Positions 2,652-31,650 of a stretch of DNA of 64,000 bases are shown here, piece by piece. This DNA is from Marsupella aquatica (lineage: Eukaryota > Plantae > Marchantiophyta), in assembly GCA_973895155.1 (NCBI GenBank), contig OZ316899.1, positions 62,001 to 126,000 on the forward strand. Reading direction: 5' to 3'. Position numbers and translations under genes: made by a program. Every line of letters starts with the position of its first letter. Positions within the stretch are counted from its first letter, which is position 1. The notes under the pieces were generated by a model. The model was not told the DNA's origin and searched no databases. It was given only the letters and a program-made list of their open reading frames with translations.

Positions 2652-5600
2652 TCACCAGTACTCAGGATATTTTGTTTTCACAATAGCAGCAGCAAACAAA
2701 ACAAAGTTATTCACTACTTTCCCTGTACCTATCTGCATGAACCAAGTAGCAAGTTCTTCATCACTTTTCTCTCGAATTTCTGGAAATTCCTTGAACAATT
2801 CTGTTTGTATCCGAGAAACCCTCCAGCCTTGCCACACAAAATGTCGAAGACGCTCGCCTGTTCTATCATTGCACTGATCACCATATGGTCCTTTATGAAT
2901 ACACATTCTAGTGACAACTACAGTATGTTGAAAGTGACACTTAAAACAAGTCCATGCATTTTGAGGGAATGTGTTCTTGCAGGTCCGGGCCTGGTGAGAT
3001 CCTAGACATCTAAAACACAATGACCGCAATATAGGACAGTTGACAGCAATGTGTACTTCTTGCTCCCTTGATTCAGGACACTGACAAATTAAGCATTGAC
3101 TTCCATCACCCGCAAAAGTTCTGATGATACGAAGATCCCTTTTATCACTCTCAAAAGATCGGTTGTGTGCCATAGCCCTTAGCCTTGCAACCACAGGCTC
3201 TGCTTCATGTACCCCTTGTATAATTGGGGTCATCGGCAAGGTGTTTCCTTGTCGTCTTGGCATGGGAGTGGCTGGGGGTTGCGTAGGAGTTTCATATGTT
3301 GACTCATCCGAACCCCCTCTTCCTGGAATTCCCATTGAAGATGATGCTACCTCATGTGGTGGAATTGAGGCTGTTTTACAAGGAATGTCTTGTGTGAACA
3401 CCTCAAAGTCGACTATGTCCACACCTGGGCTGCACATCACAGATGCTTGGGAACACAAGTCACACAAACTAGAGAATGGAATAAGATGACATACTTGAGG
3501 TTTTCCATCGACCTGGTCATGGAGCCCAAACCGACGACATGATGTCTTGTTCTCTATCCATTTGTGTGAAGCTGCTGTGGTTGAATCAATGCGTTCGGCC
3601 ATCTTGCGATAAGCAAGGTTGGTCACCACATAACTCATCGCCGGGAGCCCATCACGTCCACCTCGTCCAGATTCTTGGTGGAAGTGTTCCAGAGACCTGA
3701 AACTACCACGATGAATGACAAGCTTAACCCATTTATAATTGTATCCACTACTAATCACTCCGGTGGCCACCATGATCTTACAAGCACCTGACGTCCAAGA
3801 ACTCAATGAAGCCCTCTTCACCGCTATGTCCAGATGCGCATGCACATACACACATGACATTTCTTTCCCTTGGAGGATTCTTGTAGTTGATTCCACCTCC
3901 TCGCGGGTTAGACAAAATACTAGGGCCCTCTCTTCTGGCAAAGAATATGCTCTCCAATCACGCAGAAGACTCACTATTTCTTGATCCATCATGTTATGGC
4001 CAACCTCAACAACGGCATACCTGATGTTGGGTCTCACAGTAGGACAACGAATCCACACCATCTCTGTAGCTAACATCCGCTCAATATCAACTTGATTCTT
4101 GGGTGCTAGGGATGCAGTTAACCCTATGATTTGGCAATTAATTTCCATGAGGCCAACCAACTTTTTCATTGACGGTCGAAAGTCAGATAACAGGAGGTGC
4201 ACCTCGTCGTAGACAATGGAATGCAAGGAACCACTGCATTTCAACTGCTTTGCCAAGATAATGAATAGTTTGGATTCTGCAGCAATCTCCACAGCCACAA
4301 AAATGATCGAAGGAGGTCTTGCCACTTCGACTGCACCATCCTTATACACAACACAACTAATATTTGCTTGTTTGCATTCCTCTACGTGGCCCTCTACTAG
4401 GATAGTGAGTGGAACGATCACAATCACCGTCCTATTATGTCCCATGGTGGAAGGTGCCATGAACACCAATGATTTTCCAGACCCAGTGGGTAGTATGGCA
4501 ACAAAGTCCACCACATTATCTATGGATAGAGCAACTGCTGTTGCTTGTTCCGACGATTTCCACTGTTGATGACCAAGCCTTCTTAAGGCTTGACAAGCTC
4601 CAGCAGTCCTATTGAGACAAACTTGTAGCAGGGGATCACTTTCTCCACTTGCCAATAATGTCTGATGGATGTTTGAGTGGAAAACTGTAAACCGCCTCCT
4701 TTTGGGAATTTGCCTCACCTCATATTCAACACCTCCAACAGGTCCCAAAAAGTCAAAAGGTGCAGTCGACATTACCTCGGGCCTCTGTGACCCACCGAGG
4801 CCAACCAACTTGTGCCACAATCGTGACACCAATACACACCCTCTTAAAATATGTCCATCCATGCCTCTAGGATCCTTTGTACTACGAGCATAGTGATGGC
4901 CGACCGTAGCTGTTTCATGACCACCTGCTACATCCACAAGGTCTTCTTGTAAATGGGCCTTACAAGCTCGTATATTCTCACTCCAATGTGCTGCCACATG
5001 CCGGTACTTTGCAATCCCAAATGGAATGCCACAGTGCTTTTGGAAAGCATCTAATACACTGGCAGAAAGGTCTGCTCCCGTCAGCCTCTTGTCCATGGCC
5101 ACAAACCAACAATCCAGGTACATTGCTGCAACTTCCGGACCCCACAAAATATTTGCCACGAAAGATTGTACTGGGCGAACTAGACATAACAATTTCACAA
5201 ATAGGTGGCTTTGATTGTCAGGAATGAACCGAGCAGTGAGGTTTATAGGTTTCCCAGCATTTGCACATTTGTGGTAGGATTGATAAACCATCAGCGTATC
5301 AGATAACCAAATGAATGCTCTATCCCCAGTGGCAGTGTTGCGAATCAATAGGCTCGAGTATTCTTCCCCTCTTGCAGGTAATCCAGAACAGAAATGCAGA
5401 AGTAGGTTCAATAGCCTCTGTAGCTTGGAACATGCAACCATCCACCTGTGGAGTGCAGGCATGTTCCAAATAACTCCATTTACATTGTCCACTCGTAGGA
5501 TGAAATGTGCCATCATCATAGTATTACTGAACATGTGGTTCAATAGATCCTTTCCATGTTGTTGGAACTCTGGATTTCGGGCGTCTATGAGAAAAGAATA

Positions 5601-7610
5601 ATGCACTTCGTCTGTCTGGACAGCATCATGAATGCAGCCCTTGGTACTCACCAAATTGAGTATCCATTCAGATTTGAGACCGAGAAGAACATCATGGTTG
5701 AGTGTTGTTGTCGCTTCTTCAACAATGGCACGGATCATATCCCTGAACGCATTCAATGTGATAATATCACCGTCAATTGAGCATGCTGTTTGTGTATCGT
5801 CCATGTGTATGAGATTTGGTCGAGCATGGGTGCCTCGATTAATTGTTTTTGCCAGTCGCATGTACTGCCGAACTTGAGTAATCGGCGTGTCCAATGCCAC
5901 ATCGCTCACGTATTTCTCCAGGATGTTTACTTCATTCCCAGGTAGGCCACGTGGGTTTGGATGCCAAAGAGCTTGTGAGAGTTCCATCAGGATTGTACAT
6001 CTTGCCCAGTAGTGAAGTATTGCCAATATTTTGGTGATTTTCCCAATTTTGCAAAATGCATACCCTGTGGATTGGGAACCCAGCCCGTCACTCTTTAGAG
6101 AGTGGAGGATAAAGAACCGAGTGAGCAAACAATCCGCCGGTGAACGAGCATACAACAGCTCCGGAATTTTTGGAGTCCAGAGAAGAAGTAGTACTCGATG
6201 GATATTTGTGAGATCAATATCACCTTCTTCTGCAGGCCGCGCCTCACTTGGTTGGCCTAATTGTGCCAATAATTGTTGTAGGGCACCTTTTAGATCCGGC
6301 CTATCTGTGTATATAACACAATGTTGAGGCCGAGAATCATAAGTACAAGAACGAACGAGGCAAAGAAGAAGGGAAACCATTCCAGCACAGTATTGTGGAA
6401 CAGTGTTTTTCTCTTGTAGTCCACCCAATCCCCTTGTGACATCGGCATTTGGAGTCGGCTTCATCACCATTCTTTGCACCCTATAATCTAAATTTCCACT
6501 AAGAATATTTCTTGTGCATGTCATGTACGCACGGACCACAGTGCCCAAGTACGATAGTGAAGACCCAGGGTCGGCGGGCCTTGGGGGTTCCATCTCAGAT
6601 TGCACTTCAACAAATGGCACACCTTCCGGCATGAACTGGGATGCAATCTCATGCCATCTTGATACCCTTAGCCACGGCGACAATTCCCTCACTGGAGGTG
6701 CAAGATCTGTCTTTAATGACTGTAGATGAGCTTGAAAAACTTTTGCGACTGCACCTCTCGTACTCTGAGCTACTGCATCGTCCGCAAGGTACACATTGCC
6801 ATGGTCCACTCCATAGAATTTGCGGCCGACTCCCTTGAAGAGGGCTTGCACTTGACATGGAGTAGCAATGTCCTTGAAACCAAGGTGGTTGTGTTTCATA
6901 CATCGGTGATTTGCCATCGTCCGCTGTGATCTACAAAAGAAGATACATCTCGAGCAAGAGAAGCCCCAATGAATGAGGACGCCCGGAACTGGAGACAACA
7001 ATTCTGCAGTTGGATTGATTGTGTATGGTAGTAGGGACGCATCATTTGTACGTGTGAACAACACACCCTGCAACAAACCCGACAATTGCTCTGGTGTTGG
7101 ATTCGTGATTGAATTTTGTGTTGCAACTCTCACCCTGTCCATGTTCCTTCGATGACTTCCAACATGACGGATAATGCTACTTCCTTCCGTGTGCTGAAGG
7201 GCTGTATGGCATTGCAAGCATACTAGAAGAACAAGGTTGTTGTGGTGAACAATGCAAAGCTTTGCATTTCTCAACATGTCTGGTGTTGCTAACAGGTCAT
7301 GATCTAGGATAGTGGTGGGGACTTGGTTGACAATTGGATCGTCTACATCCATGAACGGGTCAACTCCTACTGCTTCATTGTGTTTCCTTTTGTAGTGAAG
7401 ACGTAAACTATCACTACGGGGATAGGACGAGGAACATGTGGCCACAGGGCAATGGAATCGACCATCCTCTTCTTTCTCAATGATCTGGGTTGTGCCATTG
7501 TTGAGCTGCAATTGGTAAGTAGAACGGTGAACTGAGCGGGAATGGGAACTGCGAGAGTTTGCTGACTGAAATTCTTCCCCACACTGACTACATCCAAATA
7601 CTGTCACCAT
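2652..7610 (-). CDS. Tyrosine-recombinase-like / RecQ helicase fusion protein with C2H2 fingers and DUF3505-like domain (fungal telomere-linked-helicase-like architecture)
   Basis: Uninterrupted 1652-aa ORF. It has two C2H2 fingers (CSQC..HSRSVH; CPVATC..HYKRKH) and a Cys/His region (LVCLQCHTAL..HVGSH; PVPGV..GFSCSRC..MANH..CQVQALF) resembling DUF3505/OrsD. YR-like residues are PARG (R at ~5370-5372), YHK (~5268-5276), KYRH (~4998-5009), GH (~4917-4922) and HYA (Y at ~4890-4892). RecQ motifs are LPTGSGKS (~4470-4493), DEVH (~4198-4209), LTAS, HQESGRGGRDG (~3648-3680) and the RQC-like CRR..C..CDLC. The C-terminus is Cys-rich. Confidence 0.85.
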   Translation of the reverse strand: MVTVFGCSQCGEEFQSANSRSSHSRSVHRSTYQLQLNNGTTQIIEKEEDGRFHCPVATCSSSYPRSDSLRLHYKRKHNEAVGVDPFMDVDDPIVNQVPTTILDHDLLATPDMLRNAKLCIVHHNNLVLLVCLQCHTALQHTEGSSIIRHVGSHRRNMDRVRVATQNSITNPTPEQLSGLLQGVLFTRTNDASLLPYTINPTAELLSPVPGVLIHWGFSCSRCIFFCRSQRTMANHRCMKHNHLGFKDIATPCQVQALFKGVGRKFYGVDHGNVYLADDAVAQSTRGAVAKVFQAHLQSLKTDLAPPVRELSPWLRVSRWHEIASQFMPEGVPFVEVQSEMEPPRPADPGSSLSYLGTVVRAYMTCTRNILSGNLDYRVQRMVMKPTPNADVTRGLGGLQEKNTVPQYCAGMVSLLLCLVRSCTYDSRPQHCVIYTDRPDLKGALQQLLAQLGQPSEARPAEEGDIDLTNIHRVLLLLWTPKIPELLYARSPADCLLTRFFILHSLKSDGLGSQSTGYAFCKIGKITKILAILHYWARCTILMELSQALWHPNPRGLPGNEVNILEKYVSDVALDTPITQVRQYMRLAKTINRGTHARPNLIHMDDTQTACSIDGDIITLNAFRDMIRAIVEEATTTLNHDVLLGLKSEWILNLVSTKGCIHDAVQTDEVHYSFLIDARNPEFQQHGKDLLNHMFSNTMMMAHFILRVDNVNGVIWNMPALHRWMVACSKLQRLLNLLLHFCSGLPARGEEYSSLLIRNTATGDRAFIWLSDTLMVYQSYHKCANAGKPINLTARFIPDNQSHLFVKLLCLVRPVQSFVANILWGPEVAAMYLDCWFVAMDKRLTGADLSASVLDAFQKHCGIPFGIAKYRHVAAHWSENIRACKAHLQEDLVDVAGGHETATVGHHYARSTKDPRGMDGHILRGCVLVSRLWHKLVGLGGSQRPEVMSTAPFDFLGPVGGVEYEVRQIPKRRRFTVFHSNIHQTLLASGESDPLLQVCLNRTAGACQALRRLGHQQWKSSEQATAVALSIDNVVDFVAILPTGSGKSLVFMAPSTMGHNRTVIVIVPLTILVEGHVEECKQANISCVVYKDGAVEVARPPSIIFVAVEIAAESKLFIILAKQLKCSGSLHSIVYDEVHLLLSDFRPSMKKLVGLMEINCQIIGLTASLAPKNQVDIERMLATEMVWIRCPTVRPNIRYAVVEVGHNMMDQEIVSLLRDWRAYSLPEERALVFCLTREEVESTTRILQGKEMSCVYVHAHLDIAVKRASLSSWTSGACKIMVATGVISSGYNYKWVKLVIHRGSFRSLEHFHQESGRGGRDGLPAMSYVVTNLAYRKMAERIDSTTAASHKWIENKTSCRRFGLHDQVDGKPQVCHLIPFSSLCDLCSQASVMCSPGVDIVDFEVFTQDIPCKTASIPPHEVASSSMGIPGRGGSDESTYETPTQPPATPMPRRQGNTLPMTPIIQGVHEAEPVVARLRAMAHNRSFESDKRDLRIIRTFAGDGSQCLICQCPESREQEVHIAVNCPILRSLCFRCLGSHQARTCKNTFPQNAWTCFKCHFQHTVVVTRMCIHKGPYGDQCNDRTGERLRHFVWQGWRVSRIQTELFKEFPEIREKSDEELATWFMQIGTGKVVNNFVLFAAAIVKTKYPEYW

Positions 7611-9541: not shown

Positions 9542-11002
9542 TGTACAAATATTGAGGCGAGACCAAGGAAAAAACTGTACACTCCTTGGGACAAATCAAT
9601 AGTAGATTTATGAAGGTGAGTACCTTAACATCAAAATTCCCCCTTTCTTCCCACCTACATGTTGAATTATTCATAAATCTAATGATAAAAATTACAACTT
9701 ACGGCATTTCGGTACTCAGATCTAAAATGGTTCGTGTACTATTTGACCGGAATTGTAATTTTTACTGAATTGGAATTAAAAGAAAAAAAATTCAGTGGAT
9801 TTGTTTGCTACATTGTGGGAAGATCTAAAAAAATTGACATCATAAAATTGAAGTTTACACTTTATTGGATTCTTTGTTATGAAAACATTCAAGTTGAACT
9901 TTTAGTTAGAAAAGTTCTTAAACTAAAGTCCTCAAGGTTTTGAAGGACAGTGTTTTCGAATGGCTATCAAAGATGTCACCTTTTGGACGTGGTTACAATT
10001 ATCCCTATTTTCATTGCTCCCCGTGTGAATGGGGGTACTCTTATCTCCTGAGGCTACCCTTGTGCTTGAGGGTACTCTTATCAGTGAGGATACTCTTATC
10101 AGCGAGGGTACTCTTATCAATGGGTACGCTTATCAATAATGGTACTTTGATCAACGAGGGTACCCTTATCAATGAGGATACTCTTATTTCCTGAGGGTGC
10201 CCTTGCGTATGAGGGTACTCTTATCAATGAGGGTACTCTTATATCAGCAAGAGTACTCTTATATCAGCAAGAGTACTCTTATCAATGGGTACGCTTATCA
10301 ATAATGGTACTTTGATCAACGAGGGTACCCTTATCAAGGAGGATACTCTTATTTCCTGAGGGTACCCTTGCGTATGAGGGTACTCTTATCAATGAGGGTA
10401 CTCTTATCAATGAGGGTACTCTTATATCAGCAAGAGTACTCTTATCAATGGGTACGCTTATCAATAATGGTACTTTGATCAACGAGGGTACCCTTATCAA
10501 GGAGGATACTCTTATTTCCTGAGGGTACCCTTGCGTATGAGGGTACTCTTATCAATGAGGGTACTCTTATATCAACAAGAGTACTCTTATCAATGGGTAC
10601 GCTTATCAACAATGGTACTTTGATAATGAGGGTACCCTTATTAGTGAGGGTATTCTTATCTCGTAAGGGTACCCTTGTGTTGGGCCTTGTGCACGAGGGT
10701 ACTCTTATTAATGAGGGTACTTTTATTACTCATAGCAAGCAACAAAGCGGGCAGGGAACCCCATGAAGGCGCCCCGCGCCGGCAGAAGGACTCCGAACGT
10801 ACTGAAAAGACCCTAAACCTCACGAGACCAACATTTTGGGTATTGCATGGACAAATACTGGCCAAAGTACATGCCTAAATTTACCTGCTCTGTTTTAGTT
10901 CCCTAAACCAGGGGTGATTTTTTTTTATCAAATCCATACGTTGTATCCTAGTTTTTTTCACACATGATGTAAACCTACATCATGTGAAAGTGGGAGAGAA
11001 GA
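9542..11002 (+). repeat. Repeat block A' with expanded 18-bp-based minisatellite (10031-10725)
   Basis: Direct homologue of 1305-2472 with a longer GGGTAC-rich array. Confidence 0.95.
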
Positions 11003-14621: not shown

Positions 14622-17600
14622 CTATCGTCTCGGCCTTCCTACTGCCTGTTGCCTAGACAACCTGAGTCGCTCCTCTTTCAGTACTTCCTGCAATATTGCG
14701 TTATCCTTTTTTCCGCTACTCAAACTTCCGTGTACGCATTCATCAATCAGTGTCCTCTTTCTCTGTTGTACATGCCACAATGTCTCCTCAATAGTATTCC
14801 TCATTAGGAAATGTGTAACAAACACTTCTTTTGTCTGCCCTAGACGATGAGTTCTGTCCACTGCTTGATCTTCTGCTGTTGGATTCCACCATATATCTGT
14901 AAAGAGTACATGATTGGCAGCCGTGATATTTAATCCCGTATTGGCAGCCTTTAATGACAGTAGGGCGACTTGTATCTGAATCAATCCAGTGTAGTGAAAT
15001 GCTTAGTGAGTGACCGATGTACAATTTCTCAAAAACATGCACCAAAACAACCTATATGGGGTGCTTTATGCATACCTGGCGAGATTCGGCAAAGTCTCTC
15101 AGATTTTGGTCACGCTTCTCCAAACTCATGCTCCCGTCCACCCTTGTGAACTGGATGTTTGCACTTTCAAGAGTTCCTTGTAACAAGTCAATTAAGCCGG
15201 TCCATTGAGAAAACACAATGGTCTTATCGTCACTTCCAGACTCTCGCAGCTCGTTCAAGTAAGACATGACACCATCAATTTTGGGTGATGGCCCAGAAGT
15301 ATGAAAACCGAGAATTTCCAAGTCCTCCTCTGCCAATTCAGTGCCAGACGACGTACATATATCACATACTCTGTACACCGTACTCCATGAAATTTGCTGC
15401 TTACAGTGTGGTGCTCCGCATATTATGTCCTCTTCCAGCGGATCAAAATAACAAGCTGAACTGGAACAGTAATAGTGACCACAGATGGAAATCATGGGGT
15501 CATCAAAAAGCTCACCCTGAAAATATTACAAAAATGGACTTCAAAGTTAGTGTGCAATGTCAAATGTTTCACCAATCGCCACCGGTTGAACAACACTCCC
15601 ACGGGGTACTGGATTTACAAATAGGATTTACTATGTGCGAAAAATCACCTGGCACTTGTTACAAGTCACCCCTTCTGGAGCATCCAACAACTTGTTTACC
15701 AATTCGCCTGAACGGACTCCATCGGGTTGGATCTTGGGAGTATTCACACTATCTTCTTTTTCATTGTGAAAGACAAGGTCACGATGCCCACAGTGGCGTC
15801 TCATTCTCAGCATCAACGACAGCAATTTAGCTTTCTCTTTCTTATTTCCCTTCTGTGAAGCCCACAAATCGACCCGGTTGAGTAATTGTACAAAACAACA
15901 GGGCAACCACGGTATCTGTGCACAATTGAAGAATGACAAAGTACACCCACATAGGGTGGGCCAAACTTTGGACATACCGAGTCTTCCGCTGCACTCCTTG
16001 CCTCTAATTTCTTATACACTATGGCATCGCCTTCAACTAAAAAGTCGAGATGAGCTACTCTTACATGCTTCTTAGGTAGATTCAGGATACCTGCAAACAA
16101 AATATGTCCAGCTATAAGATTGCATACAAACATACAACACATCGAAATCCATATGAAATTCAACCAATTCCAAATAATGGAAAAGTCCAATTCCAACACA
16201 TGTGAACATTGTAGTTGTAGTTGTCTTACTCTTATCTCTTCTCAATGTAATGGCCCTCAGCTCCTTGTGTAGTATTGCGTGTCCAGCTTTCCTACTTTTT
16301 GCAATATGCTGCCTCAAAATCTTGAACCGGTCTATGTCACAGTAAGGGGGGTATCCAAGAAATTTGAAATAACTGTATGCCTCCCAAGTAGAATTTGACA
16401 CAGGAGTTCCACTTACACACCATCTGCTTCTTGCATGTAGGTTGCAAGCAGCTAATGCTCTGCCACTCCTATGGTTTGAGATTGCCTGACACTCGTCTAG
16501 AATCACCCTGTACCATTGTACCTGCTCCAGGCAAGGAGGCAATGGATCCTTCGTTTTCTTGGGTGTTGGTTCCACAGGAATTTTTTGACTTAATTTCCCT
16601 TTCCTTCTCAGTGTAGGTGGGTCCGCAGTGGAATGTTGGGCGAGAGTGCCATAAGTGGTAATTATAACATCGTATAAGGCCAACTGCTTTGGATCCATAC
16701 ATCTGTCCGACCCGTGAAATATTAACACCTTTACATTTGCCCTTGCAGTAGTTTTAGTGGTAATCTCACGTTTCCATTGAGTCATAACACTTCCAGGACA
16801 AACGATAAGGGTCTTGCTTCTGGGTGGTCGATTGGTGACTAAGAGTGTAATCAGTTGAATTGTCTTCCCCATTCCCTACCAACAAATACAGTTAGTTCAT
16901 TTCATGCAATGGGGAAGAAAATTCCAAGTTCACACCACAAAACACATGATGACCCTGAAGTCAATGCGCAGCCCACTCAACATTAGGAAATGATGTGAGC
17001 TTTAGGGTTTTACCTGGTCATCTGCCAAAATACCCCCAAAACATTCGGAATCACCACTCTCCCTTGACAACATCCAGAATAGACCTTTCCGTTGATGTTG
17101 ATAAACTGTCACATTTTGCATAAGCCCATCTGGTGGGCTTGCTTCTCCTGTGAAGTCCCTATCATCGATGTATTCCTGCAATGGTCACGGAATAACAGTC
17201 AGCCTTCTTAACCGGCTCTACTTATCCAAACTGAGTATTTGGACAAGATGCTGCGACATGGTTAGTTTACTCACTCGTTCCTCTGCTTGCGAAAAAGGTT
17301 GGACTCGGACTCGGGGAAAGTCCATCTCTGAATCTGAATCTGAACAGGAATCTGCGATTGTACGACGCACGGAGGTAGCGTCAATGTCAACATGATCCAA
17401 GCTATCCCCTTCATTATCAAAAGACCACAATAGTTGTCGCCTTTTTGGGGGGTCCTCCAAATTAATACGAGTCATTTGCGAGACCACAGATGGAGAACAA
17501 CTTGCAAACTCATCCCTCTGTACGCGATTTTTACATGGCACTGGCACTGTTGTCATTTCATTGTTGGAGGTTGAACCAAGTAATGGACGTCCATGAGCTT

Positions 17601-20600
17601 GCCTCTTTGGTTCCGCGATGAACGGTATAACTGGTTCAGCGTTCGACACTTGCTTTCTCTTCAAATTCCTCACTGTACATTCCAACTCTTCAACCTTTGC
17701 AAGAGCTATGTGCAATTGGTCATCCTTGAATTTTAATTCTACTTTCTGAGTCGAAATTATTTGTTGCAAGTCTACATTCTCGCCCAATCTACAATGCACC
17801 TGTTCAAGCTCTGCCATTGTACGCTCTAAGTCCAATTTCAAAGACTCCACGTTAGTGCGCTGAGTATTGCGTTCGGCAGTGCACTTTGCTACCTCATTTC
17901 TCAGTTCCCCCATGCACATTTCGTTCTCCTTCAAAGCTTTGTGAGCAATTGCGTATTCCGCCTTCAGCCTTGTCTGTTCTACAAGTGCTCGTTGAAGGTC
18001 TTCCAACTTGCTCTGTGACTCTAATCTGAACAACTGAAGTTGTGTGCTCACATCATCTCGTTGTTTAGTGCACCCTGCAAGTTCACTTTCCAATTCTTCC
18101 ATGCGCATTTGGATATCCTTCAAAGCACATTCAGCACCTAAACATGATTCCATGCGCACTGCCTGCTCTACAACCTTCCGTTGAACATCTTCAAACTTGC
18201 AGTCTGACGACAATTTCAACAACTCAAGTTCATTGATCGCGGCATCTCGTCCTGCAACACACCTTTCAAGGTCAGCACTCAATTCTGCCATGCGCGATTG
18301 GTCCTCCTTCCAACCTTGTTCAGCAGCTTGGTAATTGTCATTGCGCTTTGTCACCTGCACAAGCTTTTCTTCAAGGTCTTTCAACTTCCATTGTGACTGC
18401 AATTTGAACTCTTCAAATTCGCTGGTGGCCGCATCTCGTTCTGCAGTGCCCATTTGAAGTTCAGCACTCAATTCTGCCAAGCGTGATTGGTCCTCCTTCC
18501 AACCTTGTTCAACAGCTTGGTATTCGTCATTGCGCTTTGTCACCTGCACAAGCTTTTCTTCAAGGTCTTTCAACTTGCATTGTGACTGCAATTTGAACTC
18601 TTCAAATTTGCTGGCGATAGCATCTCGTCCTACAGTGCCCATTTGAAGTTCAACACTCAATTCTGCCATGCGCGATTGGTCCTTCTTCCAACCTTGTTCA
18701 GCAGCTTGGTATTCATCATTGCGCATTGTCACCTGCATAAGCTTTTCTTCAAGGTCTTTCAACCTGGACTGTGACTGCAATTTGAACTCTTCAAATTCGC
18801 TGGTGACCGCATCTCGTTCTGCAGTGCCCATTTGAAGTTCAACACTCAATTCTGCCATGCGTGATTGGTCCTCCTTCCAACCTTGTTCAGCAGCTTGGTA
18901 TTCGTCATTGCGCTTTGTCACCTGCACAAGATTTTCTTCAAGGTCTTTCAACCTGCATTGTGACTGCAATTTGAACTCTTCAAATTTGTTGGTGATCGCA
19001 TCTCGTCCTGTAGTGCCCATTTGAAGTTCAACACTCAATTCTGCCATGCGTGATTGGTCCTCCTTCCAACCTTGTTCAACAGCTTGGTATTCGTCATTGC
19101 GCTTTGTCACCTGCACAAGCTTTTCTTCAAGGTCTTTCAACTTGCATTGTGACTGCAATTTGAACTCTTCAAATTTGCTGGCGATAGCATCTCGTCCTAC
19201 AGTGCCCATTTGAAGTTCAACACTCAATTCTGCCATGCGCGATTGGTCCTTCTTCCAACCTTGTTCAGCAGCTTGGTATTCATCATTGCGCATTGTCACC
19301 TGCATAAGCTTTTCTTCAAGGTCTTTCAACCTGGACTGTGACTGCAATTTGAACTCTTCAAATTCGCTGGTGACCGCATCTCGTTCTGCAGTGCCCATTT
19401 GAAGTTCAGCACTCAATTCTGCCATGCATGATTGGTCCTCCTTCCAACCTTGTTCAGCAGCTTGGTATTCGTCATTGCGCTTTGTCACCTGCACAAGATT
19501 TTCTTCAAGGTCTTTCAACCTGCATTGTGACTGCAATTTGAACTCTTCAAATTTGTTGGTGATCGCATCTCGTCCTGTAGTGCCCATTTGAAGTTCAACA
19601 TTCAATTCTGCCATGCGTGATTGGTCCTCCTTCCAACCTTGTTCAGCAGCTTGGTATTCGTCATTGCGCATTGTCACCTGCACAAGCTTTTCTTCAAGGT
19701 CTTTCAACCTGCATTGTGACTGCAATTTGAACACCTCAAATTCTCTGGTGACCGCATCTCGTCCTGCATTGCACATTTCTTGTTCAACACTCAAATTTGC
19801 CATGCACGATTGGTTCTCATTCCAACCTTCTCCAGCATCTTCATATTCGTCATTTCGCATTGTCTGTGCCGTCAACTCCCCTTCAAGGTCATCAATCCTG
19901 CCTTCTAACTTTGATTCCGATGACTGAAGTTTACATTGAATAGGTTGAGGTTGGGTTTCCCTTCTTGTAGTACCCTCGTTGCCAACATTTGGCCCCGATA
20001 TAAGGCTTTCCCATGAAAATCCCCAATGTAGCAGCAACTGTGTAATAGCAGTCCCACAATAAGCGGGGAACGCCTTTGACTCACGAACATTCCTCATACC
20101 CTGAAGGTGTTTCTTGAATTTACTTATTTCCAAAGCCAATTCATCGTAAACTAAATCACTCCAATCTGGTAGCAATTTTGGCACAGGGCCTGCTAGTCTT
20201 TTTCCCTTCGGCAAAGTACCACACAAATACCAGTAGAAATAACTCAATTGTTTTGCTGATAACTGTGAAGGCTTCTCCTTACCCAGCAGAATTTCCTGCA
20301 CCACTCTAATTGCCCCAGACCATCTATCATACGGAGCTCTCAAAAGCTTTAAACTATAGGGATTCCCTCTTATTCGTGGACGAACAAACAAATCATTGAA
20401 TTCAGGACAGTGCATTCTCTGCCTATACTTGGCAAATGTACCAGATGGCAGCTTGAATGCCGCACGTAACACATCTTGTGTGATTTTCAATGAACATCCT
20501 CGGAATTCACTGGATTTTGATGCATAATCAAATCCCAACACAAACTCCTTCACCCCACATACGGCTGTTATGTTGTAATCAATCCCAAAAGTTTGTTGCA

Positions 20601-20739
20601 GACCAAGGTTGAAAATCATTGACGATCGAGTTGGATCACCTCCCACCAAACTGCGAATTCGTTCCGGTGTGCAGGAATGCCACAACGTTCCAGTGCCGCC
20701 TGTTTCAATTCCAACCCACGGATTGTCAAAATGTTCCAC
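14622..20739 (-). CDS. Predicted chimeric protein (~1794 aa): transposon-associated N-domain, coiled-coil repeats, and RAD5/RAD16-subfamily SNF2-RING-helicase
   Basis: Exon model: 20739-17275, 17175-17014, 16875-16230, 16090-15978, 15852-15649, 15516-15076, 14975-14622. All introns are GT-AG and 99-139 nt, and the total of 5385 nt stays in frame. SNF2 motifs: EASPPDGLM..HQRKGLFWM..GGILADDQ|GMGKT, TLIVCP, DVIITTY, VILDECQ, RWCVSGTP, LLSLMLRMRRHCGH, RING CNKC..CGHYYC..CGAPHC, KTIVFSQW, RVDGSMS, LNITAANHV..WWNP..QAVDRTHRLGQ. The SNF2 part is secure; the exon 1 to exon 2 junction is predicted. Confidence 0.8.
18250..19761 (-). repeat. Coding tandem repeat, 8 x 189 bp (63 aa = 9 heptads)
   Basis: RDA codons are spaced exactly 189 nt apart (19761 to 18249). 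Units 2-3-4 recur as 5-6-7, and about three degenerate units follow. Confidence 0.95.
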
Positions 20740-21269
20740 ATATCATCACTAAACCGCAATGCAAAATTCAACTATATGCAATGACGACCAACTATTAAGT
20801 ATTGTAATCCAAACCTTCCTTTTCCACCTCCTTGTAGGGCTGGACCTCGTCGTAAGGTGACTCTGCCTTGTCCTCCATGTTTTGGATCTACTGTCCTTGA
20901 AATTCACTTCTGTCGTATGAAAGGTAGTCCAATTAAGTAAACCCTAATCCTATCACCAACACATTGCCGTGAGCAACTCATGAGGCTTACTCGACGGAAG
21001 GAGGGTATTGACACACAAGGAGCCTCTCAAAACATGACAGATTCCATTTCTGCAAAGCTGCTTGTTGCTCTATTGGATGTTGTCAATCCATGTACTTAAA
21101 CTTAAACTCCCTGTTGTGAAGAAACATTCCCTTTGTTATGAAGCGTCTTGTCCAAGTCACTGCCAACCTTTCTGGAATCCGGAAGATGCGAACTAAAATG
21201 CTCCTATATTGTCAGCACCCCATAAGCACCAAAGTTGTGCATAGTTGGTGCTCGGGTAAAGGGCGTTGT

Positions 21270-22450
21270 ACAGTCCTTCTGTATTACCCGAGCACACTGT
21301 GGCTGTGCGTTATAGAATACCCCATCCCTCGTACCCCCAACCTTCAAAATACTGTAATTTGATACATACATACCCTTCGGTGCACATTGACATTGTTTTG
21401 CATTACCCCAGAACATGGTGGCTGTGGGTTTTGGAAAACCCCATCCCTCGTACCCCCCAACCTTTAAAATACTGTAATTTGATAATACATGTACCCTTTG
21501 GAACACATTGGCACTTGTATTACCTCATGGTGGTTGTGCGTTTTGGAATACCCCATCCCTCGTACCTCAACCTTCAAAATACTGTAATTTGATACATACA
21601 TACCCTTCAAAGCACATTGGCACTTGCATTACCCGAGCACTTGGTGACTATGCATTTTGGAATACCCCATCCCTCGTACCCCCCAACCTTCAAAATACTG
21701 TAATTTGATATATACATACCCTTCGGAGCACATTGGCACTTGCATTACCCCAGCACATGGTGGCTGTGCATTTTGGAATACCCCATCCCTCGTACCCCCC
21801 AACCTTCAATACTGTAATTTGATACATACGTACCCTTCGGTGCACATTTACATTTGCATTACCCCAGCACATGGTGGCTGTGCATTTTGGAATACCCCAT
21901 CCCTCATACCCCTCAACCTTCAAAATACTGTAATCTGATATATACATACCCTTTGGAGCACATTGGCACTTGCATTACCCCAGCACATGGTGGCTGTGAG
22001 TTTTGGAATACCCCATCCGTCGTACCCCCCAACCTTCAAAATACTGTAATTTGATATATAGATACCCTTTGGAGCACATTGGCACTTGCATTACCCCAGC
22101 ACATGGTGGCTGTGCATTTTGGAATACCCCATCCGTCGTACCACCCAACCTTCAAAATACTGTAATTTGAAACATACATACCCATCCGAGCACATGGACA
22201 TTTGCATTACCCCAGCACATGGTGGCTGTGCATTTGGAATACCCCATCCCTCATACCCCTCAACCTTCAAAATACTGTAATTTGATATATACATACCCTT
22301 CGGAGCACATTGGCACTTGTATTACCCCAGCACATGGTGGCTGTGAGTTTTGGAATACCCCATCCCTCGTACCCCCCAACCTTCAAAATATTGTAATTTG
22401 ATACAAACATACCCTTTGGAGCACATTGACATTTGCATTACCCCAGCACA
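21270..22450 (+). repeat. ~116-bp tandem satellite, about 10 copies
   Basis: The CCCCATCC anchor occurs at 21320, 21439, 21551, 21665, 21781, 21895, 22011, 22127, 22242 and 22358. Copy 2 is at ~41330-42510. Confidence 0.95.
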
Positions 22451-22789
22451 TAATTATATACAAGCCATCCGGATAGTGCACTTGTGATGCCCGTTGAACT
22501 CAAATTGCCATCGGAAGCTATATATATGGACAGATTGCTTGACAGAATTCCACAATTACTTGTTATACTGTATAGTTGATATATTCTTGTGTTCATTTTT
22601 CCTGTCCATTTGGAAATTGCACAAATTAACAAAAGTATCCATAAAGGTCTGTCATCGTAGAAAGTGATGACATCAAGTCAATTTTGAGCACTCCCTCGAA
22701 GGTGTAATTGTTCAGCATTTGTAAATACCTCGCACTATATATCACGACTGTACACATTGAATTAGTTCTACTCAGCCATTTCCCATGTC

Positions 22790-24160
22790 CAAATTTGAAT
22801 GGTGACACTTTTGATACTAACGGAGTTTAAAGGTTTCAACATGAATGCTATTGCTGCAAAAATGTTTAACCGGAAATGTTATGGGAGTTTACGGTTTAAC
22901 CGGAAATGTTATGGGAGCCTACGAGCAACGAGCACATTAAGGAACCAGATTGAAGACGGGCAATAGGAATTCTAGAAGCCCAATACTTCCCGACCATAAT
23001 ACCATCCCAACCATGGCGCAGAAGGGAATTTGAAGGCGGCAAGCACATTAAGGAACCAAATTGAAGGCGGACAGGAATTCTAGAAGGCCAATGCTTCCCA
23101 ACTATAATACCAGCCCAACCATGGCGTTGAAAGGAATTTGAAGAAAGTGATGACGTCAAGTCAATTTTAAGCACTCCCTCGGAGGTGTAATTGTTCACCA
23201 TTTGTAAATACCTCGCACTATATATCACGACTGTACACATTGAATTAGTTCTAATCAGCCATTTCCCACATCCAAATTTGAATGGTAACACTTTTGATAC
23301 TAACGTAGTTTAAAGGTTTCGACATGAATGCTATTGCTGCAAAAATGTTTAACCGGAAATGTTATGGGAGTCGACTATGGTTTAACCAGAAATGTTATGG
23401 GAGCTAATCAGCCATTTCCCACGTCCAAAATTGAATGGTGACAGTGCTTTTGATACTAACAGAGATTAAAGGTTTCAACATGAATGCTATTGCTGCAAAA
23501 ATGTTTAACCGGATATGTTATGGGAGTCGACTACGGTTTAACCAGAAATGTTATGGGAGCTAATCAGCCATTTCCCACGTCCAAAATTGAATGGTGACAC
23601 TTTTGATACTAACGGAGATTAAAGGTTTTGACATGAATGCTATTGCTGCAAAAATGTTTAACTGGAAATGTTATGGGAGTCGACTACGGTTTAACCGAAA
23701 ATGTTATGGGAGCTAATCAGCCATTTCCCACATCCAAAATTGAATGGTGACACTTTTGATACTAATGTAGTTTAAAGGTTTCGACATGAATGCTATTGCT
23801 GAAAAAATGTTTAACCAGAAATGTTATGGGAGTCGACTACGGTTTAATCGGAAATGTTATGGGAGCTAATCAGCCATTTCCCACGTCCAAATTGAATGGT
23901 GACACTTTTGATACTAACGGAGATTAAAGGTTTCGACATGAATGCTATTGCTGCAAAAATGTTTAACCGGAAATGTTATGGGAGTCGACTACGGTTTAAC
24001 CGGAAATGTTATGGGAGCTAATCAGCCATTTCCCACGTCCAAAATTGAATGGTGACACTTTTGATACTAACGGAGATTAAAGGTTTCAACATGAATGCTA
24101 TTGCTGCAAAAATGTTTAACCGGAAATGTTATGGGAGTCTACGGTTTAACCGGAAAATTA
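22790..24160 (+). repeat. 153-bp tandem satellite interleaved with ~110-bp GAATTCTAGAAG-containing repeat
   Basis: The TAATCAGCCATTTCCCAC anchor occurs at 23561, 23714, 23867 and 24019. The 110-bp unit starts at 22933 and 23043 and recurs at ~24186-24400 and ~27310-27500. Copy 2 is at ~42850-44220. Confidence 0.93.
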
Positions 24161-27036
24161 TGTTATGGGAGCCTACGAGCGACGAGCACATTAAAGAACC
24201 AGATTGCAGACGGGCAATAGGAATTCTAGAAGACCAAATGAATACTTCCCGACCATAATACCAGCCCAACCATGGCACAGAAGGGAATTTGAAGGTGAAG
24301 AGCACATTAAGGAACCAGGTTGAAGGTGGGCGGCAGGAATTCTAGAAAGCCAATCTTTTCCGACTAAAATACCACCCCAACCATAGTGCATAAGGGAAGG
24401 GTCTGTCGGCAATTTGAATTACTTGTTCCCAGGCTGCTGCCAAGTGCAAGCAAGCGTGGACGTGGGTTCCCACTTTAGTTAGACAAACCATATGGAAGAA
24501 ATTCATTGAACGTGGGACGAACGAAAGTATTGTGCTTGCAAAAAGAATAGAGACAGTTTGTGTCTATCCCAACTTCATATTCTCGTTGCTATTGGCAACA
24601 GAGAAGAAGATTTAATTGCACAATGAATTGGTAATACAGAGCGTACAATGGTTTTGGTGGGGACAGTTGCCAACTCAATAACTTTGAGCTTTTAACTATG
24701 TTATTACCTAATTATCGCTGAAAGTGCTCAGACAATAAATGTTCACCTATTGCCGTAAAGTATAAACATTGTGCACGTTCAGTTCCGCTACTTGAATTTA
24801 CCAAATCAAATTGGCAAGTGTTGGATTACACATCACTTCCCAAGTTAAAGCAACTTAAATTAGCTGGAGTGAGGGTCGCCACCTATTGGAATTTGGAAAT
24901 GGAGTGCTTCTTGTGCACCACCATCAGCTTTGCCTCGGCTGACTTTTGGTGTAGTCCTCCCATCAAGCGTGCGCAGCCCCTGAGACACGAATTGCAGCTC
25001 ATGAGCTTCAAACGCTCTACAAGCATTACAAGCATTTGTGTGGCAATTCTAATGGTTGTCGTGAGCAATTGAGGGATAGACTTATACTGTAGATAATAAT
25101 GCCGGCAGCCCCATCCCAATTTCCTCATTCCAATCAGTAGTGTGCTCTGGTTTATTCCACAGCTCTTGTGGGGCCTGATAGAAACTTCCAACCATGGTAA
25201 CTCAAATGAGCAAGAAGCAAAAGAGGTATTCATCAATTTGACTAACCGGTGTTGCGACAACGCTCGCTTGAAAGGACTCAAACAATTCCAATGCCAATTT
25301 TCAGAACAAATTTGTCTTTAATCAATGCAAATGATCAGAACAGCCACACATTCAAGCACATAATTATATACAAGCCATCTGGATAGTGCACTTGTGATGC
25401 TCGTTGAACTCAAACTGCCATCGGAAGCTATGGACAAAATGCTTGATAGAATTACACAATCACTTGTTATACATAGTTGATATATTCCTGAATTCATTTT
25501 TCCTATCCACTTGGAAATTGCACAGATTAATAGAAGTATCCATGAAGGTCTGTCATCGTAGAAAGAGATTTCCAGCAAAAACTTGTAAGAAAATTGCAAG
25601 ACGTGAGGTGCTCAACAGTTTTTTGTGTCTTGGCCAGTCTTGGGAGGCCATAGGCATTCGTCTATTTGCAGGACGTTTGTTAGCTTTTTTGGGTTTGCAT
25701 AGATTACGGTACGGTGGCTATAGAGAGAAAATTGCCCGCCATTGCTTGCGGATATGAAGGAAATGCTAAGTCGAGCAGCAATTCCAACCAGAAGAGAGAA
25801 GAGACGGGTACAAAGGAAGATAGCAGGAGAGCTAGAACTATAATGCGACAGAAGTGGCAGTAAGTTAATTTGAAGGCTGCTTTCACGCTCTGTCAAAAAA
25901 TATGAAAAAGTTTTGTCTTGGTATGGACATCCAACGACAACTGCTCCAAAGATCTCCTCTCAAGGCACTTGACAAACATGCCGTAGTGAATGACTACAAA
26001 GCAAACTTTGACCCGTGTAACCAACCAGACTTCAAGCAGTTGGAATCTATCTACATCAAATGGGGCGACCCGGTGATCTATGAATTTATCAAGTTCATTG
26101 AGGCGCCGGTGGGTAAATTTACTCGGGCTAAGCTAGCCTCCGGTATTGAGCATCATCACATTTCAGCTCTGGTGGAATCCACACTCAAGATTTTCCCAAC
26201 GGCTTAGTGACTCCGAGGTGTCTACTATCCTCTTCGACTACGTGGGCAGGAATCTGCGGTCAGTGTTGTTTTTGCTTCTCCTACAGGCACTTACCGACCG
26301 CGTGTTCTGCATCACGGCCCCATTATTTTGACAACCTGGTAACACAATTCAACATTCGTGAAGCAGGAACTCGACATCCCACACATCAAAAGGAACGGCC
26401 GGATCGCGAGGTCCTACAAGTGTGCCAAGGGGTGGAGTATAAGGCAAGGCAGAAGGCAGCTTTTTGGCAGGCGTAGGCTGAGGAGCAGCAACAACGGGAG
26501 GAAGTTGAATTACAACACCTGGCATTACGGGCCCAAGAGTTTGAGGCGGATCGGGCATAGACCCGGGTGTGGATTAGCATTGAGTCTAGAGAGTAAATAA
26601 TATATCACAACTGTATAGAGTGAATTAGTTCTAATCAGGAAGCCTGGTCTTCTTTAATTTGTATCTCATTTCCCACGTCCAAAATTGAATGGTGACACAT
26701 TTGATGCTAACGGAGTTTAAAGGTTTCAACATGAAAGCTATGGGAGTCTACGGTTTAACCGGAAATGTTATGGGAGCCTCCACTTTAACCAGAAATGTTG
26801 TGGGAGTCCATATGCTGAAACTTGGAGACATACCATGCATCGCATGTGAGACACAGCCTTTACATAAGAGTCTTGTATGGTGGGTTGGACAGTGAAGGCA
26901 ATTTGGGTCCTAGGAGTGTTTGAATGGAGTTGCAACACAGATGGAGGTGAGTAGCAAGGCATGAATACCGCAACCATGGATGTTGTACAGAAGAGAAGCT
27001 CCATCACTGCACACTCGGCCTGAAACCACGCCACGC

Positions 27037-27330
27037 CACTGCCACCAGTAAGCATAAAAAACGCAACCATTCGGAAACGCCTTCGCTCGAAGACTGCATC
27101 CAACAACGACTCGAATCCATCACTTGCTGCAATTATTGACAACGTTAGTACGCCATCCAAGCGACACAAGATTCACGATGCACTGCCACCAGTAAGCATA
27201 AAAACCGTAACCATTCGGAAACGCCTTCGCTCAAAGACTGCATCCAACAACGACTCTAATCCATCACTTGCTGCAATTATTGACGACGTCAGTACGCCAT
27301 CCAAGCAACGCAAGATTCAAGATGCAGATT
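27037..27330 (+). repeat. 2 x 144-bp tandem duplication (48-aa in-frame remnant)
   Basis: CACTGCCACCAGTAAGC starts at 27037 and 27181. It reads LPPVSIK..IRKRLRSKTASNNDSNPSLAAIID.VSTPSK..KI.DA twice in one frame. Confidence 0.85.
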
Positions 27331-27906
27331 GAAGGGAATTTGGAGGTGGCGAGCACAGTCAAGGACCAGATTGAAGGCCAGCAACAGGAATTCTCGAAGG
27401 CCAATGCTTCCCGACCAAAATACCGACCCAACAATAATGCAGAAGGGAATTTGAAGGTGACGAGCACATTTGAAGGCTGGTACAGGAATTCTAGAAGCAT
27501 TGACCAAGCTTTGTTTCCTTTGTATTTCTCACGAACCTAATTGAATGGTGACACTTTTGATGCTAACGGAGTCCAATGGTTTCAACATGAATGTTATAGC
27601 TGCAAAAGACTTTTATTGGAAATGTTATGGGAGTGCGGGACTACAAGTGAGTCACAATGAATGCTAGTGGTGTATGAACACTTAAAAAATAATGTTATGG
27701 GAGCCTACGGCAACCACCCGTAAGTCACCCTAATCAATACTAGCGGAGTTTAAAGGTTTTAATAATAATGTTGTGGGAGTCCAAATGTTGAAACGTCGAG
27801 ACCGTGCACTGCATGTAGGAGACCATGCACCGCGCTCCCTAAATACCCTGAAATGGCCTGAAGACCGGCCTCATTGCACGCGCTGTGCAGAGAAGATATA
27901 TACAGG

Positions 27907-28810: not shown

Positions 28811-30244
28811 TGTTGGCCGTGGATTTTAAATGAACGGGCCAGATGCTTGTATACACACGACCACACCATCTTCTTCACGACCGCCACTACACTTGTTACA
28901 GGCCTCCAAAACAGCCACACAGCCGCTGCACTACGGCCGTAATGCGCCGATAATATATATAAGTTGCAATGAAATAAATAATTCTACTTCAGGATATATT
29001 ATTTATGTGTGTAGGACCCCCTAAATGTTTTCACTGGTAGTAAAGTAATCATTAAACTGTTAAACCCTTTCAAGGTATTATAAACACTTAATGAACACTC
29101 AACTATTATTTGATTCCTAACCAGAACAATCTTTATGGTACAACCTCTCGCCAAGTTATTGAGTATCCACCAGGCTACAAGTAGTCAATTCAGATCGGCG
29201 GCAGAAGAATAATCATTTTGCCTTGAGTAACTCTGAAGTGTGATTCATTTATGCCTGGTTTGGCCTTGATTTGTCATCCGTCACATCTGGTCATCCCGCC
29301 CCTATCCTGACACCGTCCCAACCTCATCCCAACCCTATCCCAACCCCACCCGGTCCCAACCACACCCCGTAGGGCAACATGTAAACTTGCCCGTTAACTC
29401 AAACCGGGCATTTATCCCACACAAAGATCATCCAACCCCAGGGGCAAGTGAATAATCATTATGCATGGAGTAACTGTGGAGTGTGACTCATTTCTGCCAA
29501 GGGAAGATCATCCAAACCCAAGGGAACACAGTACATTGAAAATGGTCAGAACATTGAACTACACAAACAAAGAGGGAGCTCGACCTGTACTTGCTCTAGG
29601 TTGGTCTCCTAGTGGTGTTGGCTATGCTGACGAGGAAGAAGCCTGAAGCAAGCTGCCTCTCTCCGGCCACAATTCCAGGATCCTGAAAATTAAGCTTAGT
29701 TCACACCCTGACTTGGGCGTATGGCCAGGTTGACATTTTCCCTCCCTATCATTCTTATTGTTAGGAGAACAGGATTGACAGTTTTGAAGTAAATTCTGGT
29801 GTATTATCCTTTCCTTTTAATTAGTAGATATTTAAAAAACAGAAGGGTTTGCAGAATTGATCACAAAGGACATGGTTACATTTCATTATATTGAGTTTAT
29901 GATGGTTTTATTACATAAACCCTAATTTTGCTTTGAACTTTTTATTGAATACTCCACGTTTCTCAGATTGCACAAGGGGATCTGGTTGACATTGGGATGA
30001 CTTTGTGAGTGCAAAATCTACTTCCTTTAGTAGTTGGGAAGCTATCCGCCCTCTTTCACAAGATATTGCCTTACAGTTCATTCAAAAGTAAGTTGGCTTC
30101 AAGCACTATTGTTGCCAATGATATGAAGCTCTATATGCACTTGGAGAAATGAGTTTCAGTTTCAGGTTTCTTGTCATTGTTTTTGGTCATCCTCAAGACA
30201 CTAAATCCTTTTAGTGTTCTGTGCAGTGTCATTCATGCCAACAT

Positions 30245-31650
30245 TGTACAAATATTGAGGCGAGACCAAGGAAAAAACTGTACACTCCTTGGGACAAATC
30301 AATAGTAGATTTATGAAGGTGAGTACCTTAACATCAAAATTCCCCCTTTCTTCCCACCTACATGTTGAATTATTCATAAATCTAATGATAAAAATTACAA
30401 CTTACGGCATTTCGGTACTCAGATCTAAAATGGTTCGTGTACTATTTGACCGGAATTGTAATTTTTACTGAATTGGAATTAAAAGAAAAAAAATTCAGTG
30501 GATTTGTTTGCTACATTGTGGGAAGATCTAAAAAAATTGACATCATAAAATTGAAGTTTACACTTTATTGGATTCTTTGTTATGAAAACATTCAAGTTGA
30601 ACTTTTAGTTAGAAAAGTTCTTAAACTAAAGTCCTCAAGGTTTTGAAGGACAGTGTTTTCGAATGGCTATCAAAGATGTCACCTTTTGGACGTGGTTACA
30701 ATTATCCCTATTTTCATTGCTCCCCGTGTGAATGGGGGTACTCTTATCTCCTGAGGGTACCCTTGTGCTTGAGGGTACTCTTATCAGTGAGGGTACTCTT
30801 ATCAGCGAGGGTACTCTTATCAATGGGTACGCTTATCAATAATGGTACTTTGATCAACGAGGGTACCCTTATCAATGAGGATACTCTTATTTCCTGAGGG
30901 TACCCTTGCGTATGAGGGTACTCTTATCAATGAGGGTACTCTTATATCAGCAAGAGTACTCTTATCAATGGGTACGCTTATCAATAATGGTACTTTGATC
31001 AACGAGGGTACCCTTATCAATGAGGATACTCTTATTTCCTGAGGGTACCCTTGCGTATGAGGGTACTCTTATCAATGAGGGTACTCTTATATCAGCAAGA
31101 GTACTCTTATCAATAATGGTACTTTGATCAACGAGGGTACCCTTATCAATGAGGATACTCTTATTTCCTGAGGGTACCCTTGCGTATGAGAGTACTCTTA
31201 TCAATGAGGGTACTCTTATATCAACAAGAGTACTCTTATCAATGGGTACGCTTATCAACAATGGTACTTTGATAATGAGGGTACCCTTATTAGTGAGGGT
31301 ATTCTTATCTCGTAAGGGTACCCTTGTGTTGGGCCTTGTGCACGAGGGTACTCTTATTAATGAGGGTACTTTTATTACTCATAGCAAGCAACAAAGCGGG
31401 CAGGGAACCCCATGAAGGCGCCCCGCGCCGGCAGAAGGACTCCGAACGTACTGAAAAGACCCTAAACCTCACGAGACCAACATTTTGGGTATTGCATGGA
31501 CAAATACTGGCCAAAGTACATGCCTAAATTTACCTGCTCTGTTTTAGTTCCCTAAACCAGGGGTGATTTTTTTTATCAAATCCATACGTTGTATCCTAGT
31601 TTTTTTCACACATGATGTAAACCTACATCATGTGAAAGTGGGAGAGAAGA
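30245..31650 (+). repeat. Repeat block A'' with 18-bp-based minisatellite (~30735-31375)
   Basis: Third direct copy of block A. Confidence 0.95.

Follow-up and report, generated by a model that had tools for sequence, protein, structure and literature searches.

The stretch of DNA analyzed here (hereafter the window) is a piece of 64,000 nucleotides (nt) from the genome of Marsupella aquatica (Marchantiophyta; assembly GCA_973895155.1, contig OZ316899.1, positions 62,001 to 126,000 of the forward strand), and the subject of this work is a locus at which a long open reading frame (ORF) of 1173 codons is followed directly by the exons of a helicase with SNF2 and Helicase_C domains and a putative RING. 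This eukaryotic window contains a ~20-kb tandem duplication (8256-25303 matches 28962-45363 at 98-99% identity) and a second duplicated block (25926-27906 vs 47146-49126, 98-99% identity), and the whole SNF2-RING gene is carried inside the tandem-duplicated unit. The copy described in most of what follows (copy 1) extends from about 20878 or 20739 to 14622, and the other (copy 2, a pseudogene) occupies 35249-40801; both are encoded on the minus strand, as are all gene features given below unless stated otherwise. A previous sequence-only reading of the window had proposed that the long ORF is spliced in frame to the helicase, and that a transposon-type domain had thereby captured a host chromatin remodeler.

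Proposed exon-intron structure of the gene

The long ORF runs from 20739 to 17218. Its codon 1155 (CGA, 17277-17275) is followed immediately by GTGAGT, with CTGAC and a TTGCAG acceptor 99 nt on, and the junction reads ...GAG GAA CGA^GTGAGTAAACTAACC...GGCTGACTGTTATTCCGTGACCATTGCAG^GAA TAC ATC GAT (here and below a caret marks a splice site), which is phase 0 on both sides. The donor motif GT[AG]AGT occurs just twice in the 3.56-kb ORF, and one of these occurrences, 19 codons before the ORF stop, is the donor of intron 1. This intron (17274-17176, 99 nt, phase 0) holds the stop codon at which the ORF ends when read through (17220-17218), and the distance from that stop to the intron 1 acceptor is only 43 nt.

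Upstream of the donor the long ORF can be divided into an orphan N-terminal domain (N-domain) of ~260 amino acids (aa) at 20739-19960, an array of tandem repeats with units of 189 nt (63 aa, nine heptads) at 19964-17863, and a Ser/Asp/Arg-rich tail at 17862-17275, which ends in ...VQPFSQAEER at codon 1155. Downstream of intron 1, exon 2 (17175-17014) leads from EYIDDRDFTGEASPPDGLM through HQ to GGILADDQ at the start of the helicase core and was matched in tblastn by many plant homologs. Exon 3 (16875-16230) encodes the SNF2 N-lobe from GMGKT to LRRDK(S), exon 4 (16090-15978) reads from ILNLPKK to EARSAAEDS, and exon 5 (15852-15649) contains LLSLMLRMRRHCGH and ends in CNKCQ with the first two RING cysteines. 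The remainder of the RING (CGHYYC-SSSA-C...C-GAPH-C) and the start of Helicase_C are located on exon 6 (15516-15076), and Helicase_C motifs V-VI (QAVDRTHRLGQ) and the stop codon TAG (14624-14622) on exon 7 (14975-14622). The junctions after intron 1 were set by hand (ILADDQ^GMGKT, RRDK-S^ILNLP in phase 1, AAEDS^KGNKK, CNKCQ^GELF and ESRQ^IQVALL); introns 2-6 are 100-139 nt long, several of them with CTAAC- or CTGAC-like branch motifs.

When joined, the six downstream exons yield a stop-free SNF2-RING-Helicase_C product of 639 aa, which together with the 1155 upstream codons amounts to 1794 aa, and the six GT-AG introns leave a single frame of 1794 codons that ends at 14622. Both the donor and acceptor around codon 1155 and the single frame of ~1794 aa had been claimed by the sequence-only reading, and both were borne out, the latter also by the alignment of the 639-aa part with plant homologs given below.

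A candidate 5' coding exon may precede the long ORF at 20815-20878, with an ATG at 20878 (MEDKAESPYDEVQPYKEVEKE plus 1 nt), the start context AAAACATGG and the donor GAAG^GTTTGG; both of these signals are identical in copy 2. It would be connected to the long ORF at ...GAAACAG^GC through a candidate intron of 115 nt (20814-20700, phase 1), in a frame that was worked out by hand.

DNA contigs from other sequencing runs cross the junction between the long ORF and the SNF2 part (e.g., 17092-17335 and 15354-17222), and the juxtaposition of the two is thus not an assembly join. Loose ends at 17371 and 17416, in two of four runs filed as RNA (X3 and X4), were considered as a recombination breakpoint, and this was dropped because one 146-nt contig sharing 46 nt fits better.

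Identity and phylogeny of the helicase

Exon 3 matched Pfam SNF2-rel_dom (PF00176, E-value 6.4e-38) and Helicase_C (PF00271) was matched by exons 6 (4e-7) and 7 (2e-11), and the motifs GMGKT (GxGKT), DECQ, SGTP and QAVDRTHRLGQ are intact in the spliced helicase. A search with exon 3 against 1.84 billion representative proteins returned 18,822 matches, of which the best full-length ones came from plants (Cardamine, Selaginella, Physcomitrium, Riccia and many angiosperms) and carry the names "ATP-dependent helicase C23E6.02" or "helicase-like transcription factor CHR28". Residues ~1166 to 1754-1777 of the spliced model align with plant homologs at 30-35% identity over ~600 aa (E-value ~1e-100), and this near end-to-end alignment validates the exons built by hand. 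Among the 88 alignment columns that are at least 93% conserved in 57 relatives, 76 are kept in the helicase, and the changes are mostly conservative.

In a maximum likelihood tree the helicase was placed inside a green-lineage clade of 43 rows, with a support of 96 in the Shimodaira-Hasegawa-like approximate likelihood ratio test, that also includes Selaginella CHR28, Cardamine CHR28 and the Physcomitrium homolog, whereas fungal-type sequences (with "GGILADDM") form a separate branch. The end branch of the helicase, at the base of this clade, measures 3.19 changes per site vs a median of 0.53, i.e., six times the family median; because of this length the exact position of the helicase in the tree is unsure, and the SNF2 part is not a recent capture of a host gene. 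No HIRAN domain was detected by Pfam in the pieces scanned (the whole long ORF and the stretches of exons 3-7, without exon 2), and the protein is therefore not of the RAD5/HLTF type, its nearest relatives being CHR28-type proteins. Of the two kinds of SNF2-RING protein named earlier, RAD5/RAD16 and FRG, the FRG side stood, as membership in the FRG/Ris1 clade, while the HIRAN domain of the RAD5 side was not found in the scanned pieces.

On sequence grounds, the 3' 639 aa constitute a divergent, well-preserved green-lineage Ris1/FRG (CHR27/CHR28) SNF2 ATPase with a probable RING between the RecA lobes. With CHR28-type genes it shares the SNF2 N-lobe, a RING-like stretch between the lobes, Helicase_C and the signature "GGILADDQG.GKT", but it differs from them in the RING spacing (C-x4-C vs C-x2-C) and in the size of the N-terminal exon (1155 codons vs 93-395 in the genes compared). 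By the same evidence the helicase is a real, fast-evolving FRG/Ris1-type paralog that did not arise by recent copying of a conventional host gene.

Yeast Uls1/Ris1 and Schizosaccharomyces pombe Rrp2 (SPBC23E6.02) are SUMO-targeted translocases and ubiquitin ligases. They belong to the same SNF2 subfamily and likewise have a long, poorly conserved region N-terminal to the ATPase-RING core; the plant relatives of the window helicase are named automatically after C23E6.02. In PMC8171942, FRG/CHR27/28-type proteins are placed in the Ris1 subfamily, and Groth 2014 and Han 2014 are cited for roles in RNA-directed DNA methylation and together with SUVR2, which are known for Arabidopsis FRG1/2 only.

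The closest relative of exon 3 (43% identity) is located on a low-coverage eukaryotic contig of 3990 nt (ENA ERZ2610361, NODE_30). This contig appears to share the boundaries of exon 3 and to encode a RING of the canonical C-x2-C form, and it also seems to have the plant family's last intron (ILDLQ^GTAATT), absent from the window gene; it begins at exon 3 and offers no upstream sequence to compare. The top library match (Thlaspi arvense CAH2053537.1) is a mis-joined annotation of a partial, RING-less SNF2 copy and the N-lobe of a second copy, and was rejected as a special relative since two matched stretches in this double SNF2 model account for its high score. A second metagenome scan returned only an intronless SNF2 protein of 478 aa with 33% identity, which was irrelevant.

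The N-domain and the predicted helical repeat

The N-domain matched no Pfam family even at E<=10, no protein by HMMER in an index of 5.8 billion proteins (two word-indexed searches with candidate lengths of 645-2050 and 154-490 aa) and nothing in a JGI metagenome scan, and tblastn within the window matched only copy 2. A counterpart of exon 1 was likewise not found in the 150 nearest SNF2 relatives. The single-sequence AlphaFold2 model of the N-domain was unusable (predicted local distance difference test, pLDDT, 39). Its neighbors in the embedding space of the ESM Atlas were, among 100 named matches, PF20167 Transposase_32 in 76 cases and ATHILA in 12, at scores of 0.88-0.90 with ~150 of 256 features shared; such a count of shared features is lower than is usual for genuine family members, and the tool itself grades these neighbors as a lead only. 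The proposal of a "transposon-type N-domain" hence found no backing from Pfam or HMMER, and what is left of it are the Transposase_32/ATHILA embedding leads.

The plant mobile domain (PMD, PF10536), Transposase_32 (PF20167) and ATHILA ORF1 are accessory proteins of Ty3/Gypsy elements with the domesticated relatives MAIN and MAIL1 (PMC7156037, PMC5418596). These families provide most of the language-model neighbors of the N-domain, but the N-domain differs from them in having no hidden Markov model (HMM) or pairwise sequence match to them at any threshold.

Residues ~260-1000 consist of 63-aa tandem repeats with ~8.6 near-identical units (91% identity), diverged flanking units and a higher-order periodicity of three units (567 nt). 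Since 63 equals nine times seven, the heptad register is kept across the units, and AlphaFold2 modeled three units as one uninterrupted helix (pLDDT 91). The array is accordingly modeled as a continuous helix, in agreement with the rod of ~700 aa described earlier. Pfam matches to CENP-B_dimeris and Aegerolysin in the repeat region were regarded as compositional, there being no significant individual stretches.

Intron positions shared with plant relatives

For the comparison of intron positions the exons of four annotated relatives (Cardamine CHR28, Pterospermum, Selaginella CHR28 and Riccia) were mapped to their genomic loci. In each of them a phase-0 intron lies 7-9 residues ahead of the anchor "E(A/S)(S/F)...", with which the helicase core begins, and the exon upstream of this intron is long and variable (93-395 aa). 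The acceptor of intron 1 in the window gene, likewise in phase 0, precedes EASPPDG by 10 residues. Introns 2, 3, 5 and 6 match those of plant CHR28-type genes in exact position and phase, the coinciding sites being ILADDQ^G (phase 0), RR(T/D)K (phase 1), C.(I/K)C(N/Q)^ (phase 0) and the site before (V/I)(S/Q)V..SLKA (phase 0). Intron 4 is near-coincident with a plant intron and falls inside a 5-residue alignment gap, and two introns of the plant family (LLKHQ^RIAL and LALQ^QKKR) are missing. As far as these positions tell, the gene keeps the exon-intron structure of the plant family.

Phylogeny and intron comparison had both been suggested by the sequence-only reading, and they yielded the FRG/Ris1 clade and the four sites that coincide with CHR28. 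Its statement that introns were retained agrees with their plant-type positions; its view that a host remodeler was captured presupposes a direction and a recency that were not shown, the branch being six times the median.

The location of intron 1 at the conserved phase-0 site of the family implies that exon 2 is an internal exon by descent, for which an upstream exon with a phase-0 end is required. When the N-terminal regions of 122 relatives were used as tblastn queries against the window, no other FRG-like N-terminal exon was detected, and the 43 nt between the ORF stop and the acceptor leave no room for a terminator and a promoter. As exon 2 needs an upstream phase-0 exon, the frame of 1155 codons is the only candidate.

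Comparison of the two copies

Copy 2 keeps the GT and AG dinucleotides of every splice site, so the earlier statement that the splice sites are kept in both copies holds; that copy 2 is a pseudogene had been missed. The number of registered 63-aa units differs between the copies, with 10 in copy 1 (19964-17863) vs 7 in copy 2 (40023-38490), and the array therefore changed after the duplication. The substitutions between the copies are transitions in 23 of 28 cases, and the coding changes comprise 11 non-synonymous and six synonymous ones. The locus appears to have been duplicated in tandem recently, with copy 2 now decaying.

Among the DNA runs, variants in the helicase exons were synonymous in seven cases and non-synonymous in five, and those in the exon 1 tail synonymous in six and non-synonymous in eight. 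These counts, small as they are, suggest that the helicase is constrained and the tail only slightly so.

One gene or two

We consider copy 1 to be probably one gene that would encode a protein of ~1794-1802 aa.

Several observations weigh against this interpretation. The start codon of the long ORF is not established, its head having no ATG (the ORF opens with GTG after a stop in the same frame, and Met first appears at residue 41). ATGs in frame do occur in exon 2, e.g., in ...GLMQNV..., and the previous statement that the SNF2 exon has no start of its own is hence not literally true; the length of 1173 aa, in turn, is set by the long ORF's own stop. An HMM of 32 plant segments upstream of the intron found nothing in exon 1, and a junction-spanning family profile gained no score from the true tail. 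A pairwise match between VQPFSQAEERE of the window and VQAFSLGDEKE of Physcomitrium (BLOSUM62 score 30, reached by 0 of 2000 random exon 1 segments; p = 0.04 vs shuffles of the tail) implies a different alignment of the intron, in conflict with the intron-position comparison, and was not relied on. The further search that had been proposed, for homologs with the same order of N-domain, coiled-coil and SNF2 parts, found none in the libraries and metagenomes searched; the genome's own proteins and those of close relatives are missing from the protein libraries. The RING of exon 6 alone reached an E-value of 0.008 with zf-RING_UBOX, below the cut-off (the domain is split by intron 5), and although all eight of its ligand positions align with the plant RING, the C5-C6 spacing is x4 vs x2 in the family. 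The four runs filed as RNA (X1-X4) behaved as DNA, their contigs being unspliced through all introns and one run consisting of GATC-ended, Hi-C-like pieces, and splicing is therefore unproven. Finally, copy 2 has the nonsense codon TGA in place of CGA at 38617-38615 and has lost 1 nt in exon 6 (T4>T3; position 15307 in copy 1, ~35934 in copy 2), and these two lesions make it a pseudogene.

The strongest of the alternatives is that two units lie side by side, i.e., that a stand-alone, transposon-type ORF of 1173 aa ending at 17218 landed or recombined upstream of an FRG-like exon 2, the helicase being 5'-truncated or starting from an internal ATG and the in-phase donor being coincidental. The Atlas leads to Transposase_32/ATHILA, the in-frame ATGs of exon 2 and the lack of detectable homology between exon 1 and any FRG N-terminal region would all fit such an arrangement. 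We nevertheless judge it unlikely, because an in-phase GT[AG]AGT donor would occur within the last ~80 nt by chance in only ~1% of cases (estimated from motif frequency), the acceptor corresponds to the one conserved in the family for an internal exon, and the gap of 43 nt is too small for an independent promoter. Moreover, a search around the long ORF for long terminal repeat (LTR) ends, inverted repeats and a retrotransposon interior found none of these, and a 5'-truncated remnant is not expected to have retained 639 codons together with six introns and 76 of the 88 conserved columns over so long a branch.

That both copies are unexpressed relics in a repeat-rich subtelomere, the frame of copy 1 being intact only because duplication and decay are recent, is more improbable still: it would accommodate the two lesions of copy 2, the excess of transitions between the copies (as expected for methylated, silenced DNA), a ratio of 11 non-synonymous to six synonymous changes that is not clearly different from neutral, and the fact that no RNA run holds the locus (the runs found behaved as DNA), but a frame of 1794 codons with six introns and intact catalytic motifs on a branch of 3.19 changes per site speaks for long-term selection until the recent past, and the helicase-exon variants lean toward synonymous.

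Proposed origin and function of the extended protein

Taking copy 1 as one gene, the frame of 1155 codons would be this gene's version of the long, variable N-terminal exon of the family, joined to the helicase through the conserved phase-0 intron (17274-17176). The exon would have been rebuilt into an orphan N-domain, a helix of ~700 aa made of 63-aa repeats and an acidic, Ser-rich linker. By analogy with Uls1/Rrp2 and FRG1/2 the protein may act as an ATP-driven DNA translocase and E3 ubiquitin ligase, which the long rod and the N-domain could tether or dimerize at particular chromatin, possibly that of the repeat-rich subtelomere.

A more specific origin can be put forward only tentatively, namely that the variable exon of an FRG/Ris1 gene received, by an in-frame fusion at the DNA level, an LTR-derived, PMD-like/coiled-coil module. 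In the resulting fast-evolving chimera, a transposon-derived recognition module and a helical spacer of ~100 nm would guide a translocase of silencing or anti-silencing type to the chromatin of retroelements or subtelomeres. MAIL3 (PMD-PP7; PMC7156037) sets a precedent for the joining of a PMD to another enzyme, and the putative chimera would be an analogous cis-fusion in which the partner is a chromatin motor. An FRG paralog with a remodeled large, variable N-terminal exon would account for the exon structure just as well, and a role of the fusion protein in anti-silencing or in the targeting of integration is speculation.

Overall, we interpret the locus as encoding a SNF2-RING protein of the Ris1/FRG type whose N-terminal extension is unprecedented, the fusion being probable but unproven, at a recently duplicated subtelomeric locus of which one copy is dead. 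FRG/Ris1-type SNF2-RING proteins function in RNA-directed DNA methylation and SUMO-linked genome maintenance, and how they are targeted is poorly understood. Within the family it is the N-terminal region that varies, and here this region would have been replaced by a possibly transposon-derived domain and a rapidly expanding helical repeat. If expressed as one protein, the gene would represent a natural experiment in the re-targeting of a chromatin motor and a candidate player in the conflict between transposons and their host; if the two parts are separate, the locus would be a transposon ORF beside a decaying helicase paralog.

Surroundings of the locus

Two satellite arrays are located directly upstream of the gene (21283-22451 and 23251-24156), one with ~10 copies of a 116-nt unit and the other with ~6 copies of a 153-nt unit, and the presumed promoter region (20900-21280) adjoins the 116-nt array. 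The other flank of the duplicated unit (10028-10708) contains satellite units of 18, 145 and 163 nt, and a block at 1305-2197 is found again at 9542-10425 and 30245-31088 with ~89% identity. Further along the window there are ORFs of 673 aa (57657-59675, plus strand), 227 aa (60522-61202, minus strand) and 190 aa (62624-63193, minus strand) without a Pfam family. Just outside the duplicated unit, an intact ORF of 1652 aa (2652-7610, minus strand) combines DEAD and Helicase_C domains (RecQ-like) with an OrsD-type domain (PF12013).

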